DNA from: Vitrella brassicaformis CCMP3155
Lineage: Eukaryota > Protista > Chromerida
Length of the DNA stretch: 64,000 nt
Direction of reading: 5' to 3'
Assembly (NCBI GenBank): GCA_001179505.1
Contig: CDMY01001052.1
Span: forward strand, 1 to 64,000
Made by a program: the position numbers and the translations under genes. A model generated the notes under the pieces. That model saw only the letters and a list, made by a program, of their open reading frames with translations, had not been told where the DNA came from and searched no databases. This document shows positions 7,849 through 52,514 of the stretch, one piece after another; the stretch's first letter is position 1, and each line of letters begins with the position of its first letter.

Positions 7849-10059
7849 ATGGGGTCAAGGAGAAGCAGGGCCACCCGGAGCGGTGCCGCCCCGGTGCACT
7901 TCAACATCAGCAAGGGCGAGGGGGCGTTCAAGGATGTGTCGTCCCTCTCCCAACCCCTCCAGTGGGCGGCATACCTCCTCCCCATCGCCGTCGTGGCCCT
8001 CACCGAAGGCATACAGCTCGTCGTGTGCGCCATCCTGCGGTCGGCACTCATGAGACACTACGCCCAGACCGACCGAGCCGCCAGCCTTCTGAGCGCCCTC
8101 CCGCTGGCCGTCTGGCTGCTCAAACCCTTCATGGGAATGGCTCTTGACGCCTTCGGCTACATGGGGGAGTACCGGCGGCCTGCCCTCGTCATGACAGGTC
8201 TCTCGGCGTTCCTGTCGCTGTCGTCACTGCTGTTCGTCATCACCCACCCCACTGCCTTTGGCGACACCATGCTGCCCGTCCTCTCGTCGGCCTTGTATGC
8301 CTCAGCCGGCCTGGCGACGCTCACCACAGCGTCGGAGGCCATCACGCTGCAGCGTGCGAGGCAGCAGACGGCCGGTGGGGCGGCCTGGACCTTCTCGGTG
8401 TCCATGGCGGGCCGTGCTGTGGGCCTGTCCTTGGCGATTTTGATGTCTAGCCTTCCCCTGAGTGCTGCTGCCGAGAGCTCGGTTCTCGGGTTCGTGTCGC
8501 TGGTCCCTCTGTGCATCAGCTTCGCGGCGTCGCTATTTAACGAGAGGACGCTCTTGACGTGCGATGGGGTGCCGACGAGAGCTGTGTCGAACCTCACCCT
8601 CTCCTTGGACAAGGATGGCCTGCCCGTGCCAGCAGGTGACACACACACACATGCCGCCGTAAGGAGAGAGAGAGAGGCAGGTCCGATTTCCCTTCTAACG
8701 TCATTTGTGGGTTGTGTGTTTCCCTCTCTGTGTGCTGTGCTGTCAGCTCCCCGGAGCAAGCCTCTGCGGGAGGTGTGGCGCTCCCTGAGCGACTACTACC
8801 GACACGTGGCGGTGGTGGGGTCCCTGACCTACCTCTTCCTTATGGTGGCGGTCCCCGATGTGCGCCCGCACATGACGGATCTGCTGGGCGATCGGTTCAA
8901 CTGGCCGACCGTACTCGACGCATACCTGCCCTTCCTCGCGCAACTCGCCAGACTCGCCGGAGTGGCGCTGTTTCAGGTGCGTAGGTGTGATGGTCGTCAA
9001 GGAGGAGACCGGAAGCAACATAGAGTCATCTCTTTCCCTCTCTGTCTCTTTCTCTCTGCGTGCGTCGGCGCGCGTGTGTGTGTGTGTGTTCAGGTTACTC
9101 TGTACAAGCTGCCCTTCCGCACTCTAGGAGGTCTGTCGACGGTGGCGTCCATCCTGCCCAAGGCAGCCCTCGCCCTCCTCCTGCACCCCGCCTCCCCCCT
9201 CACCCTCCCAGCCCACTCGGCGTCAGGGACGCTCCAGTGGCTGCTCCTCATCGATACCGCCCTCTCAACCATCGCGTGTGAGGCGCTCTTCCTGCGGCTG
9301 CTGCTGCTCGGCTGCCGGCTGTGTCCAGAGGGGCTGGAAGCGACCGGCTTCTCGACCGTGGCGGCTGTGAGCACTCTCGGTGCTTGGGCGGCGAGGGGCG
9401 GAGGGGGGCTGGTGATGCAGCAGCTGGGTGTGGCGACCTGGGAGGGGCTGTGGCTCACACAGGTGGTCATCATGGCGGCTTACCTGCTGCCCACGCTGGC
9501 AGGGGTGCGGGTGGTGACCGATGTGGAGGCCTACGACTTCTCGCCAAGCGATGTGGACGACGACGAGTCGACTCGTGACCATACCAGCAGTGGCGTCGGC
9601 TCCGAGACATCGCCGCTGATCCTCCCAACCCCCGAGGTCAACGCGTTTCACCACCACCACCACGGCAGCAGCAGACGCCCCTTCGCCGCGCTCACCCACT
9701 CGTCGGTGCTGTCGTCCCCCTCCTCCTGCACAAGCATCAGCAGCCGGGACGACGACATGAGTCCATCGCCCCTCAAGGCCCCCGAGGTGCCGCAATACGG
9801 GTCGATGGCGGCCAACGACCGAAGGAAGCGGCCGCAGCGGAGCTCTGCGCGCAAGAGCAGTGGGAGAAGGGTCGGGGGCGAGGGCAAGGCTAACAACACT
9901 GAGGAGAGCAATGCCGATCAGCAGTGGGTGATTGTCGAGGACACGGTGCCGCGAGGCAAAGCCTACCGCGGTAGCCACCACCACCACCACCACGCTACGC
10001 CGTTTGGGAAGTTTCCCACCATTCGTGACGTCGACTGGGCCACCAATGCGACACTGTGA
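7849..10059 (+). CDS. BT1-family folate/biopterin transporter (MFS-like)
   Basis: 736-aa ORF with many hydrophobic segments and the motif WLLKPFMGMALDAFGYMGEYRRP; LCPEGLEATGFS resembles the BT1 C-terminal half; probable in-frame introns near 8635-8746 and 8977-9092. Confidence 0.85.
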   Translation: MGSRRSRATRSGAAPVHFNISKGEGAFKDVSSLSQPLQWAAYLLPIAVVALTEGIQLVVCAILRSALMRHYAQTDRAASLLSALPLAVWLLKPFMGMALDAFGYMGEYRRPALVMTGLSAFLSLSSLLFVITHPTAFGDTMLPVLSSALYASAGLATLTTASEAITLQRARQQTAGGAAWTFSVSMAGRAVGLSLAILMSSLPLSAAAESSVLGFVSLVPLCISFAASLFNERTLLTCDGVPTRAVSNLTLSLDKDGLPVPAGDTHTHAAVRREREAGPISLLTSFVGCVFPSLCAVLSAPRSKPLREVWRSLSDYYRHVAVVGSLTYLFLMVAVPDVRPHMTDLLGDRFNWPTVLDAYLPFLAQLARLAGVALFQVRRCDGRQGGDRKQHRVISFPLCLFLSACVGARVCVCVQVTLYKLPFRTLGGLSTVASILPKAALALLLHPASPLTLPAHSASGTLQWLLLIDTALSTIACEALFLRLLLLGCRLCPEGLEATGFSTVAAVSTLGAWAARGGGGLVMQQLGVATWEGLWLTQVVIMAAYLLPTLAGVRVVTDVEAYDFSPSDVDDDESTRDHTSSGVGSETSPLILPTPEVNAFHHHHHGSSRRPFAALTHSSVLSSPSSCTSISSRDDDMSPSPLKAPEVPQYGSMAANDRRKRPQRSSARKSSGRRVGGEGKANNTEESNADQQWVIVEDTVPRGKAYRGSHHHHHHATPFGKFPTIRDVDWATNATL

Positions 10060-46600: not shown

Positions 46601-47664
46601 GACGGACACACACCACATGCGTCTCATGTGTGTGTGTGGTGTGGGTGGATGAGTGCATGAGTGGATTGGAGGGGTACCTTCCTTACCTGCAGTAGCGTCG
46701 CATCTCTTCGACGGTCCTGGGTGCCTCGAGGAAGGCAATGTCCGCACCCATTGCGTGGAAGGCCCGGCAGCGGCGGATGGCCTCATCAAGCCTGCACTCA
46801 CACACACCCATACATACGACAGAGGTGATGTGTGGCTATTTGTGGTCTCTCTCTTCTCTCATCTCCTTCTCATCTCACCCACCCGAGGGAAGCCCGCGCG
46901 TCGGTGCGGGCCAGAATGCAAATGTCGGCGCCCTCATCCCTGCCAGGACACACCAAGCACACAACGGGTGAGAAACGACACGCAGTGGATGTGCTGTGCT
47001 GTGGTGTGGTGTAGCCGGCCGAGCGCACCCCACCGTACCGCGCGTCAATGGCGGCCATGACGCGCATGCAGGCGTCTTCGAACGGGATGACCTCCTTGCC
47101 CGCGGGGTGGCCGCACTTCTTGGGCGCCACTTGGTCCTCTATCATGATGCACGCCACACCCGCACGGGCGTACCCCTGAACCGTCCTCTTGACGTTGACC
47201 GCATTGCCTGTTTGACCCACACACACACAGACCCATGGTGTGTGTCGTGTGTGCACACAGCTACCTGCAGTGCAGTGAAAGCTTACCGTATCCGGTGTCA
47301 CCATCAGCGATGAGCGGGATGCTTTTGACGGCCTCCGTGATCGCCCGGCAGCTGTCCAGCATCTCAGAGTAGGCCAGCATCTGGGTGTCGGGGAATCCAC
47401 GCGCGCCAGACACCGAAAACCCGCTCATGAAGGCGCAGGGGAACCCTGATGGACACACCACACACAGCCGCACACACGCACGATGGATGCAGTGCAGATC
47501 TCAGCTGATCTCTCCCTGATCCAATTAATCCAGTGCGGACCTTCCTGCTCAACGAGCCTGGCGGTGAGATCGTCGTAGCAGCCTGGCGCCTGGATGACCC
47601 CGGTGGGCGAGTTGAGGAGCTCACGCAGGCGCTCGGCAGCGGGGTTGCGGTGGGGACCCATCAT
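46055..47664 (-). CDS. Isocitrate lyase / PEP mutase superfamily enzyme (methylisocitrate or dimethylmalate lyase-like)
   Basis: QAPGCYDDLTARLVEQ, AFMSGFSVSG, PLIADGDTGYGNAVNV, IEDQVAPKKCGH, ILARTDA, GADIAFLEAP, MANLIEGGSTP. Confidence 0.92.
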
Positions 47665-48124
47665 CTTATTTTGGTCGTTCGAGGGGTGGGCTGTGGGCTG
47701 CAGGCGACGTTCAGTTGACCCAGAGATGACGGGAGAGAGAGGGATGGTAGGGAAGCAGGGAGGCCAGCAGGCAAGAAGGAGGAGAGTGACGGCGGATATC
47801 AAAGGGTGCTAACGAATATGAATTGCCGTCCAGTGATCGCTTTCGGCCAATGGACGGCATATTTTTTGCCGATTCCTGGCCAAGTGGAGACACGAGACAC
47901 TTCGGTGTTATTTAGCTATGGTGTCGAGTGTCCCGAAAGCCACATGTTCACACCTAGCTACACAGTCACTCCGAAAAACGACACAACACATGCAACACAC
48001 ACCGATGGTAAATCAATCACAAGTGTTTGTCGGTCTCTGTCTGTCAGAGGCTGTTCGCCTCTTTCTCGGTCAACATCTTTCATTCCAACCGACCGCAACC
48101 AACGACCTGGTGGTATGGTATGAT

Positions 48125-50177
48125 TCATCCCGTCTCTGCTGGCTCAGCTTCTACGAGACCCTGGTTGATGAGGAGCTGCTGGAGCTCCCCCTTGTCGAAC
48201 ATCTCAGACACAATGTCCGCACCGCCAACGAACTCGCCACTGACATACAACTGCGGGATGGTCGGCCAGTCTGAGAACTCCTTGATGCCCTGCACACGCA
48301 CACGCACACGCACACGCACACGACAGACACATGTGTGTGTGTGTGCATGTGCGTGTGTGGACAGTGCAGTGCAGAGGAACGCCGTCGACCTCTCTGATGG
48401 CCATGGACGAGAGGACGTCTACAGAGACGAATTCGAGGCCGAGTGTTCTGAGGATGGCCACCACTGACGCCGAGAAGCCACACTGCGGGGTGGACGGGGT
48501 GCCCTGAATGAAGAAGAAGAAGAAACAAACGCAGGTACGGATCAGGGCAGCCCCGAGGAGTCGAGTCGGATGGAATGAATGAAGCACCGAGTGAGTGTGC
48601 CTGTCCTGTCCGTCCGTCGCTGGGTGTTACCTTCATGAAGAGAACAACTTTATGCTCCCTCACAATGTCACTGCAGCCAGCCAGCCAGCATCCAATCCGT
48701 GTTGTTGTCCATCTCACATCTCACTGGCCGGCTGACTCACTGACTCACTCAATGACTTCTTTAATGGGTTTGTTGATCTCTCGCCTCGTCGTCTTGGGCG
48801 CGTCAGCCTTTGAGGGATCCTGCACCACACACACACCGCCACTCGTGTGTGTGTGTGTGTGTGTGCGTGAGTGTGGTGGTGCGTGTGGCTTTGCTTGCCT
48901 TGAGGTACTCGAGCACACTGTCGACGAAGCTGTTGTCGCCCTCCCCCAGCCACTCCACCTCCAAGTCACTGTTGACTACACAGGCAAACCTGAACCAACC
49001 AACACCCAATGCAAGCAAACCATCCATCCATCGCACAAAGAAGGCAATCAATCAGTGTGAGCCTTAGTTCTCGCCACCGACCTTCTCGCCCTGAGGCCCA
49101 TCAGCGCCCTGGAAGCGTCGAGCTCCATCCCTGACGCCTGGTGGAGTGGACGGAATGATGAATGGTGTAACCATAGATGCGATGATGCATTCCTTCATGC
49201 GTGCGGCCCACGTCCACGCTACGCTTCACACGCACCCGAGTGAACTCGGCGTTTCCGTCGGATATCATCATGACGCGGCCCTCCACGCCCGCGTTGCTCG
49301 ACCATGCTGCACACACACACAAAGGAAGGAAACCTCATGTGTGTGGAGTGGAGTACAGTGAGGGCGTTGGTCAATTCAGGCTGGATTGACCGCACCCCAC
49401 ACACGAATGCGTGGCGTGCCCCGCACACCGACAGACCTTTGAGGACGAATGGATCTGCAAACAAACAGCCAGCCAGCCAGCCAGACAGCAAGCCAGCCAG
49501 CGAGCCACTTTTCTGTCCTCCCGTCCGTTGCCCTCCCTCCCTCACGCACCATTGACAGCGAGGCAGGCCACGACGTCCACGCCAAATGACTTGATCTCAT
49601 CCACCTTCTCCAAGAAGCCTGGAAGGTGCTTCTCAGAACAGGTGGGCGTGAACGCACCTGTGGATCCGTTGCACCGCACCGTCCACACCCACACGCCAAG
49701 CGACACACACAATGCTGCAATGCATCCCACCTGGCACTGCAAAGAGGACGCTCCTCTTCCCCCGAAAGATGTCATCAATCATCACCTGCACGTACAACAC
49801 GCACGCACCAGAAGCGCCAGATGGCCCAGGGATACAATACAATACACTGCACACCATCACGATCATGAGCATCCCGCCCTTCTCACCTCAGCGTCGAGTG
49901 GCAGCGTCCTCACGCGCGCTGATGGGATGGGGTTGCCCCTGCTCAGCTTCATCCGCAGCAGGCTCCGGTGGTGGTGGTGGTGGTGCCTGTGATGCCGCGC
50001 TGCTGCTTCTCTCGCAGGGACTCGGGAGGAAGGAGAGGACAGGGGCGATGGATATCGGTGGAGGGAAAGGGTGAATGCATATGCGTCGGTGCATCTTGCG
50101 GTGAGGAGTGAGGCGGCCACAGCCCAGAGGCTGACCGTCGATAAACATGTACCTTCGAGAGGAGGAAAGATCATCAT
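48125..50177 (-). CDS. Type II peroxiredoxin (Prx5-like) fused to a monothiol CGFS glutaredoxin, with bipartite-like leader
   Basis: Prx: [42 protein letters not shown]. Grx: [38 protein letters not shown]. The junction is a GC-AG intron at 48898-48820. Confidence 0.82.
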
Positions 50178-50540
50178 GTCGTGCGCCGCAGCAGGCGACA
50201 ATTAGTGCGCAATAGCGGTACGTCGCCCTTGCACAGCTCTAGCTATCACACAGCTCTCTGCCTGGCTGTGCGTGTTGCATGTTCGCATACTTACGTAGCT
50301 AGGCCTATCCGTCCGTCGCATTCTCTGTCCATCCATCCATCCAGAGAACAAACAGCACGGACGTCTTCACCAGACGCACGCGCACACGGATACATACACC
50401 CCAACACAACACGCACGATACCATAACCACATCATTCAATCCATCTCTCTCAGCTGTACAAGTACTTAGCCGCCCCCCCTCCCCCGCCCTGCCCTGCCTG
50501 TCTTCCCCCTTAGACAGCCTGTGTGCCGGCCGGCCGTCAC

Positions 50541-52514
50541 TCACTTTGACCGTTTTTTGTTGTGTTTGGCGGTGGCGCTGCTGCTGAGCTCTTCGGGTGT
50601 TGCCCGAGTCCACTCCACAAACGCCTCGTACCCGCTCCTCTTGGTGATGAGGCCGCTGATGAAGGCGTCAGACGACCGCCCACGCCACGGCACCGCCCGC
50701 ATGGACGCACCCACAGCCGCACCGATGCGGAATGGCACCAGCTGCAGACAGACACACAGGTCCGCCCATTCATCCAGCCAGCAAGACGGCATTGTTTTGT
50801 TTGTCTACTTGTTCACTCACCTTATTGGCGGATCTTCTCTTGAGCGACGCCTTTCGCCCGGCGTCATCGGCTCCGTGCCGCGCCAGGTACTGCTCGAACT
50901 CGGAGGACCAGTCGATGGTGTGCTCGACGGGGCAGGCGTCCGCCGTGGCGCCCAGAATGTACGTGTTGGTCGGCGAGAGCATCGCACCACCCACACCCTG
51001 CTGCTGCTGCTGCTGCTGGGAGGCCGCGGCCGTCTTGTTGATTCGCTCCTGGAGGAACCCTCTTCCCTTCTCCTCATTGATCTGCGCGTTTTAGACAGAC
51101 AGACACACACACAGACACATAGATGCCGACCGACAACACACCATTGTGGTTGCGCACTGCCCTGCACTGCACTGCACTGCCTGCGCTGGTTTACGATGCT
51201 GATCATCTTGCTGAGTCTCTGCTGCTGCATGAGGGGCGGGGGGCAGCGGTCCTCTCTGTGCCAGGTCACCAACGACGTCAGCAGGCAGCTGTGCCCGTTG
51301 CGGGTGGAGTTCAGCAGCGGCGCCCAGGAAGGCAACACGCTCTCGAAACCTGCGTGAAACCAAGAGAGATCGCCACCGTGTGTCTGTGTGTGTGTGTGTG
51401 TGAGCCGGTCGCTGACCGAAGTACTGTGCCGCGGCGAATATGGAGGCGTCGACACGGTCGAAGAGGAGAGCCCCGCTGTCTGTGCCGTCCTGATGTGTGT
51501 CGACAGGGAAGAAGTGCGTGAGAGCCTGCCCTTTTGTGTTGAGTTGGCTGATGAGGTCGGGCAGGCCCTGCACATACACACACGACACAAGGCAACGGAT
51601 CGGACATGTCTGTCTATGTCTGTGTGTCTGTGTGTGTGTGGATGGGTGACTGTGTGACCCTTGCGCCTCTGCATGTGACGCAGATGTCCACTTCATGCGC
51701 CTCCAAGGACGACACGAACGACTCGAGCAAGTCCCTGCACACACACACATACACATGAGGGAGGGAGGGAGGGAGGGAGGGGGGTACTCACCCACCTCAG
51801 TGCAAAGTAGAGTGCCCCATGCAGGTCATTCGTCGGCACGTGATGCCGTCTCCCTGTCTCAATCACAGCCTACACCNNNNNNNNNNNNNNNNNNNNNNNN
51901 NNNNNNNNNNNNNNNNNNNNNNNNNNNNNNNNNNNNNNNNNNNNNNNNNNNNNNNNNNNNNNNNNNNNNNNNNNNNNNNNNNNNNNNNNNNNNNNNNNNN
52001 NNNNNNNNNNNNNNNNNNNNNNNNNNNNNNNNNNNNNNNNNNNNNNNNNNNNNNNNNNNNNNNNNNNNNNNNNNNNNNNNNNNNNNNNNNNNNNNNNNNN
52101 NNNNNNNNNNNNNNNNNNNNNNNNNNNNNNNNNNNNNNNNNNNNNNNNNNNNNNNNNNNNNNNNNNNNNNNNNNNNCCCCCCCCCCCCCCCCCCCCCCCC
52201 CCCACACACACAGAGGGAGACAGACGATGAGAGAGCCGAGCAGCCACATCACACACATCCCATCAAATGACTGACGCCGGCCGTCTGCCACTGCTCACGC
52301 ACTGTGAGACTCACAGGTGTGTCCCATCCCGCCAGCGGCTCGGCGTTTTCGACAATCATGCACCCATGGTCTCGGTCAAATTGCAGCGGGTTCACGCGAC
52401 AGAAGTGCGATTCGGGAGCCCCCATGGGCAGCAGCAGGCCGCCAGTGCGCCACCGGACCAAAGGCAGCCTGTGTGAATGAGGGAGGGAGGGAGGGAGGAG
52501 GCTGTCATCTGGTC

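Follow-up and report, generated by a model that had tools for sequence, protein, structure and literature searches.

A gene on the minus strand of the coral-reef alga Vitrella brassicaformis CCMP3155 joins a peroxiredoxin (Prx) to a monothiol CGFS glutaredoxin (Grx). It lies at positions 48125-50177 of the window, a stretch of 64,000 nucleotides of contig CDMY01001052.1 (assembly GCA_001179505.1). Our results show that V. brassicaformis truly possesses this fusion gene, that the gene is expressed and that it is conserved. As far as the RNA contigs show, the fusion is one transcript with one reading frame.

From the sequence, we propose, with a probability of about 40%, that the product may act as a peroxide-gated Fe-S/glutathione module through a relay from Cys122 of the Prx to Cys275 of the Grx, rather than as a bulk detoxifying enzyme. 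Whether CGFS Grx perform redox catalysis in vivo or handle Fe-S clusters only is an open argument in the field. The fusion ties a CGFS Grx to a thiol peroxidase whose relatives need Grx, and both parts are strongly constrained. It bears on whether a tethered class II Grx can serve a Prx and whether peroxide can gate Fe-S binding.

Gene structure and transcripts

The gene model was prepared on the minus strand of 47600-50700 by joining exons through the reading frame and splice signals. The CDS (1080 nt; 359 codons plus the stop, for a product of 359 aa) is composed of 11 exons, and its splices are seen in RNA-derived contigs. On the minus strand, these are exon 1 (50177-49887), exon 2 (49785-49731), exon 3 (49657-49550), exon 4 (49454-49437), exon 5 (49306-49236), exon 6 (49137-49082), exon 7 (48989-48899), exon 8 (48819-48749), exon 9 (48670-48631), exon 10 (48503-48390) and exon 11 (48289-48125), the last of which includes the TGA stop. 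Exon 4 is a microexon of 18 nt, encoding DPFVLK inside the Prx domain. Exon 7 is the last Prx exon and exon 8 the first Grx exon. Exon 8 ends in GA|GTGAGT and leaves a split codon that is finished by exon 9. Nine of the ten introns are of the GT-AG type (73-130 nt), and the seventh is GC-AG. The first-pass annotation had described a continuous spliced frame from a leader through a type II Prx to a CGFS Grx, and this description was upheld with small corrections by the 11-exon model and the RNA contigs.

The ATG at 50177 is the first one past an in-frame TAA at 50204-50202, and no ATG is present in the 61 bases 5' of it. The 5' UTR covers at least 50178-50238, since the RNA contig X1 begins at 50238. 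The 3' UTR, as far as the RNA contigs reach, is 47896-48124; the contig pieces end at 47896 (X1), 47941 (X7) and 47887 (X8).

The seventh intron (48898-48820, 79 nt) separates the last Prx exon from the first Grx exon and is called the junction intron here. Its borders are AAG|GCAAGC and GTGCAG|GAT, in agreement with the strong GC donor noticed earlier. When this intron is read through, a tail of 33 codons is followed by a stop (ORF 48803-49051), as had been predicted for the unspliced form. Furthermore, no Met occurs between residues 193 and 266 of the protein. Thus, the Grx exons have no plausible start of their own, as the first reading of the sequence had also found.

The stretch is present in eight public runs, four of which contain about 0.4 of its words, a value equal to the exon share. 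The contigs of four runs (X1, X3, X7 and X8) were aligned to 47500-50800. Those of X1, X7 and X8, which come from three studies, were free of introns: each run gave one contig (1370, 1566 and 4516 nt, respectively) from which all introns were gone. X3, a DNA run from the same sample as X8, gave the unspliced form. Eight splices are listed among the joints of the three RNA contigs, including that of the junction intron. At the junction joint (48818->48898), 79 bases are skipped, with 70 letters on the shorter side and three ambiguous letters, and the joint fits 48820-48898. The two introns flanking the microexon appear as a single skip of 241 bases (joint 49308->49550), with 16 microexon letters between the sides. 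The last intron lies inside a masked repeat, where the contig coordinates allow room for just the five exon bases. Only the spliced form was observed among the RNA contigs, which cannot reveal rare variants such as a minor Prx-only form that retains the junction intron.

The upstream and downstream neighbours were also recorded. The next downstream gene on the minus strand (47425-47802) begins about 90 bases past the end of the fusion 3' UTR. Its N-terminus (PGCYDDLTARL) resembles, by eye, the PEP mutase/isocitrate lyase family, to which it is a candidate member. On the other side, the 4516-nt contig of X8 continues from the 5' region of the fusion gene into an upstream minus-strand gene (50479-50743 and beyond), the last exon of which ends near 50541. 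The continuation could reflect overlapping UTRs, read-through or an assembly join. Farther away in the window, a BT1-family (folate/biopterin transporter) ORF of 736 codons lies at about 7849-10059 on the plus strand. Its public Vitrella counterpart has 660 aa and 90% identity over the whole length. Since the public model is shorter (660 aa against 736 codons), it probably removes an in-frame intron.

A relative of the fusion gene was obtained from an environmental sample. When 1.84 billion representative proteins were compared with exon 11, a 63-aa fragment with 94% identity was found, and it was located on a 2437-nt ENA metagenome contig (ERZ893784), named L001 here. In a word search with exon 11, the L001 fragment was the only close match and the remaining ones were bacterial Grx4 fragments. 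L001 belongs to an environmental metagenome assembly and represents an uncultured organism closely related to Vitrella (dS of about 0.18 in the fusion gene). It has each of the 11 exons, the microexon included, and its junction intron starts with the same GC donor but is 65 nt long, with a TAG acceptor.

These results bear on the view that the fusion is an artefact, in which separate genes or a chimeric assembly would simulate it and the Prx would end in a retained intron. Read-through of the junction intron does meet a stop after the 33-codon tail, and contigs may merge neighbouring transcripts. The latter caution does not apply to the joint of exons 7 and 8, because that splice needs one pre-mRNA. 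The first-pass annotation had suggested inspection of cDNA across 48898-48820, and had named separate Prx and Grx transcripts as the observation against a fusion. The junction intron was precisely removed, with the frame kept, in single contigs of X1, X7 and X8, which contradicts separate transcripts. In addition, the same structure and GC donor are found in the independent contig L001, and the Grx part lacks a start codon. As far as contigs can tell, an artefact is thus extremely improbable.

Leader, domains and their conservation

Residues 1-34 (50076-50177, minus strand) form a signal-peptide-like start, as judged by sequence and hydropathy: a hydrophobic core is followed by a cleavage-like site, A-Y-A|F. 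Residues 35-75 (49953-50075, minus strand) resemble a transit peptide in composition, with seven Arg, nine His, seven Ser, four Pro and one acidic residue, a His run included. The leader of L001 has the same layout, namely a hydrophobic core, a small-x-small|Phe site (T-H-A|F) and a basic stretch rich in Ser, Pro and His, and its sequence has diverged with indels. Targeting peptides typically diverge in this manner. The layout agrees with the signal-plus-transit leader seen in the first-pass annotation, and this bipartite-like leader probably takes the fusion protein to the plastid. The His-rich run in the second part of the leader reads HHRHHHHHH (residues about 61-70; 49965-49995), and its counterpart in L001 reads HHRHQHH.

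The protein contains Cys at positions 11, 29, 122, 147, 203 and 275. Residues 76-230 (48899-49952, minus strand; exons 1-7) were assigned to a type II/Prx5 peroxiredoxin by structure matches and a full-length alignment. The peroxidatic motif PxxxTxxC is present as PGAFTPTCS at residues 115-123. The codon of the peroxidatic Cys122 is at 49640-49638, and that of the second Cys, Cys147, is at 49565-49563. In the PDB, exon 3 matched poplar type II Prx (1tp9, 41 bits) and human PRDX5 (40 bits), and Prx5 structures were matched at E 4e-10; the match to the Prx of the Haemophilus influenzae hybrid (1nm3, HI0572) was weak (25 bits). In a MAFFT alignment with five Prx5 proteins, residues from about 80 to 231 were aligned, so that the whole domain was covered, and both conserved Arg (G-x-R...R-F/Y; RRF) were present. 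The microexon is seen in the RNA contigs as well as in L001. The single exons of the fusion gene, which are short, gave no match in Pfam. By these features, the N-terminal part appears to be a complete plant-like type II/Prx5 peroxiredoxin.

A linker of 18 aa (residues 231-248; 48766-48819, minus strand) is followed by a class II monothiol Grx at residues 249-359 (48128-48765, minus strand; exons 8-11), which was assigned by structure, by TIGR00365 and by alignment matches. The active site CGFS is at residues 275-278. Cys275 (codon 48482-48480) is the sole Cys of the domain. The loop between Lys267 and Cys275 is elongated (K-GTPSTPQ-C); its alignment with poplar GrxS14 (GTKDFPQCGFS) is free of gaps, and its length equals that of the HsGrx5 loop GTPEQPQ. 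The WP motif is encoded at 48268-48263, within residues 312-321. At the position of the GGC motif, the sequence reads GGADI, so that Ala replaces the semi-conserved second Cys, a residue that allows an internal disulfide in some CGFS Grx.

When exons 10 and 11 were compared with the PDB, only class II monothiol Grx (GrxS14, Grx5, E. coli Grx4 and Grx3) were matched at E <1e-4. Class I Grx1 was matched by exon 11 alone, at E of about 1e-4, and 1nm3 was not among the PDB matches of the Grx exons. The best structural relatives were poplar GrxS14, yeast Grx5 and E. coli Grx4. In TIGR00365, the NCBIfam model of the Grx4 family, exon 10 covered positions 20-57 (39.8 bits) and exon 11 covered positions 58-97 (65.9 bits), the two abutting seamlessly. 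Their rough sum, for positions 20-97, is 105.7 bits against a cut-off of 117.1; exons 8 and 9 cover positions 2-19. Residues 249-354 gave a gapless alignment of 106 aa with a free-standing 110-aa CGFS Grx, at 61% identity. Neither exon 10 nor exon 11 matched, at E 0.01, the model TIGR02190, which we take to describe the Grx part of the Prx hybrids from bacteria. Judged by these matches, the C-terminal part is a complete canonical class II CGFS glutaredoxin, with every hallmark of the class kept.

Over residues 98-359, Vitrella and L001 differ by five amino acids, with dS of 0.18 and dN of 0.01. In the Prx, dN/dS was 0.045, and in the Grx it was 0.068. The linker had no nucleotide change, over just 13 synonymous sites, and the introns were 61-80% identical with indels. 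These low dN/dS values, the unchanged linker and the diverged introns show that purifying selection acts on both domains and on their joint in at least two lineages.

The conservation must be considered together with the view that the two domains may have independent activities, sharing only a promoter and a leader. Read-through and a newly arisen intron would have linked adjacent genes; the Grx would serve plastid Fe-S trafficking, the Prx would remove peroxide, and the two might be cleaved apart after import. In favour of this view, both domains are complete and equally constrained, and the Grx, which lacks both a start and a leader, relies on the leader of the Prx for import. A cleavage site could also be provided by the linker, which is basic and flexible. 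However, this same linker is unchanged against L001, where dS is 0.18 elsewhere, although it holds just the 13 synonymous sites. We regard independent activities as unlikely.

Distribution of the architecture

The combination of a Prx with a CGFS Grx was compared with published surveys. A survey of Grx domain combinations reported that Prx-Grx fusions are confined to proteobacteria and that their Grx is of the CPYC class; in its Table 2, the partners of CGFS Grx include no Prx (PMC2679010). The first-pass annotation had stated that the bacterial Prx5-Grx hybrids carry CPxC-type Grx, which agrees with this survey. Our literature searches for Prx-Grx fusions, full-text searches among them, found nothing beyond the bacterial hybrids, and the Vitrella genome paper mentions neither the Prx nor the Grx family. 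Against the literature searched, the claim of a new combination holds.

Sequence collections were searched in several ways. Among the best 150 matches listed for exon 11 in the representative proteins, none had a Prx domain and most were multi-Grx proteins; these matches extend down to about 69 bits, and single-Grx fusions with lower scores lie outside them. The ESM Atlas search with exon 11 gave fragment clusters only. Exact look-ups of the small ORFs expected on the RNA contigs and of the supposed single-exon neighbouring genes gave no match.

Furthermore, a degenerate DNA pattern (GAFTPTC, 135-154 aa, CGF, 35 aa and WP) was used; it is narrow and blind to intron-bearing genes. No fusion was found with it in the genomes of 185,579 prokaryote species, where its three matches were chance occurrences beside alphaproteobacterial Prx5 genes. 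Viral contigs gave zero matches. In metagenomes, for which only the 145-154 aa spacing was used, one real contig was obtained (L002); a further match, L003, was due to chance.

L002 (CENP01136984.1, 275-1161) is an AT-rich marine contig of bacterial type. It has a sigma-70-like promoter and AAGGAG, followed by a Prx5 gene of 165 aa. The TGA stop of this gene shares bases with the GTG that begins a complete CGFS Grx4-type gene of 109 aa (143 bits, TIGR00365), and a tRNA-Thr comes next. L002 was therefore ruled out as a Prx-Grx fusion: the genes are adjacent, overlapping and probably co-translated. The Prx family to which the L002 protein belongs consists of single-domain proteins of 165 aa. In L012 (313-992), the Grx ORF in the same place has only 61 aa. 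In L007-L011, the Prx is 81% identical to that of L002, no Grx gene is present, and a hydrophobic ORF of 32 aa is found there. Thus, the Prx-Grx gene arrangement of L002 is not stable among its relatives.

These results support the view that the architecture of a Prx with a CGFS Grx is unreported in the literature and is not common in prokaryotes, the pattern scan being a weak negative. Since the Vitrella Grx does not match the Grx domain of the hybrids (TIGR02190), the fusion arose independently of the bacterial Prx-Grx hybrids. With the Vitrella gene, which is known from one algal lineage, a separate origin of the Prx-Grx architecture is added in eukaryotes.

Possible roles and relation to known systems

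Membership of the inactive, cluster-binding class of Grx is determined by the elongated loop and the WP motif, and HsGrx5 requires both to bind its cluster (PMC7138851). Class II Grx are proteins that coordinate Fe-S clusters but do not remove glutathione from targets (PMC8256493). Both reports agree with the statement in the first-pass annotation that CGFS Grx bind Fe-S clusters and are poor reductases. Because the class II features of the Vitrella Grx are kept under constraint and no second Cys is present, we consider it most likely that the domain has retained the binding of glutathione and of a [2Fe-2S] cluster. On the other hand, the fusion might simply have inherited its class II features.

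The proposed module would work as follows. Cys122 of the Prx would react with peroxide to give a sulfenic acid, which could be captured by glutathione or directly by Cys275 of the tethered Grx. At rest, Cys275 is predicted to be a ligand of a glutathione-bound [2Fe-2S] cluster bridging two Grx domains, and a Prx dimer would keep two such domains near each other. Peroxide would toggle the Grx between a cluster- or glutathione-binding state and an oxidized or glutathionylated state, a switch that would at the same time resolve the Prx. A narrower form of the proposal, which we put forward tentatively, is that of a plastid thiol relay: Cys122 would sense H2O2, Cys275 would be oxidized or glutathionylated as a result, and the bridging [2Fe-2S] would thereby be released or blocked. 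We know of no natural precedent for a Prx that passes its oxidation to a class II Grx. If the proposal is true, the fusion would be the first natural protein that directly links peroxide sensing with Fe-S cluster carriage, and a natural test of class II Grx redox work in vivo. It may also offer a natural scaffold on which probes for peroxide or Fe-S could be built.

The main rival is a self-recycling peroxidase. The sulfenic acid of Cys122 would be glutathionylated, Cys275 would remove the glutathione, and GSH would regenerate the Grx, and tethering would offset the poor activity that a class II Grx has by itself. Type II Prx are known to be clients of Grx, and the partners joined in a fusion usually act one after the other; both points speak for recycling, the simpler reading. 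In plastid PrxIIE, the sulfenic acid is glutathionylated and recycled by class I Grx, and its kin are likewise regenerated through GSH and Grx (PMC8256493). Proteobacteria already use a Prx-Grx fusion (PMC2679010). The marine contigs L002 and L012 carry a Prx5 gene that runs into the start of a CGFS Grx gene; the overlap in L002 fits a recycling partnership equally well and counts against the relay. There is also a class II enzyme, Chlamydomonas GRX3, that deglutathionylates GAPDH according to a study cited in PMC8256493.

Several features do not agree with self-recycling. Every determinant of class II inactivity is present in the Vitrella Grx, the failure of class II Grx at deglutathionylation is reported (PMC8256493), and fusions of roGFP2 with HsGrx5 stay poorly active (PMC7138851). 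The Vitrella Grx has no second Cys for an alternative route of reduction. Moreover, the catalogued hybrids use CPYC-class Grx (PMC2679010), and the Vitrella exons do not match TIGR02190. We consider self-recycling less likely than the peroxide-gated module but a serious alternative.

When free of clusters, class II Grx catalyze S-glutathionylation and not the reverse reaction (PMC8256493). This property would suit a peroxide-driven protein glutathionylase, in which the Prx would make a glutathionyl group from H2O2 and GSH, and Cys275 would hand it on to client proteins. Such an activity is purely speculative, with no known clients and no precedent, and we think it quite improbable.

The bacterial hybrids, such as H. 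influenzae PGdx (HI0572, PDB 1nm3) and Bordetella PrxGrx, have the same order of domains, an N-terminal Prx5 with PGAFTPTCS and a C-terminal Grx. Their Grx is of the CPYC class (PMC2679010), whereas the Vitrella Grx is of class II, with CGFS and a match to TIGR00365. The Vitrella Prx is also nearer, in exon 3, to plant and animal Prx5 (1tp9, 41 bits) than to HI0572 (25 bits), and unlike the bacterial genes, the Vitrella gene is eukaryotic, with ten introns and a targeting leader.

A likeness to plant plastid PrxIIE is seen in the type II Prx, with its second Cys 25 residues past the peroxidatic Cys, in the probable plastid location and in the glutathione chemistry to be expected. In plants, however, the PrxIIE reductants GrxS12 and GrxC5 are separate class I proteins, whereas in Vitrella a class II Grx is attached. 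Obornik and Lukes counted four Prx5 genes of the plant-like kind in Vitrella and reported bipartite plastid leaders for two of the four; glutaredoxin is not mentioned in their text (PMC5354554). The fusion gene fits the description of these genes.

As for the Grx, the CGFS site, the loop, the WP motif and the single active Cys are shared with GrxS14, GrxS16 (with a GIY-YIG domain), Grx3/PICOT (with a Trx domain), Grx5 and E. coli Grx4. The catalogued class II Grx fusions have no peroxiredoxin partner (PMC2679010). The Vitrella protein differs from them in this partner, and also in the Ala that takes the place of the GGC Cys.
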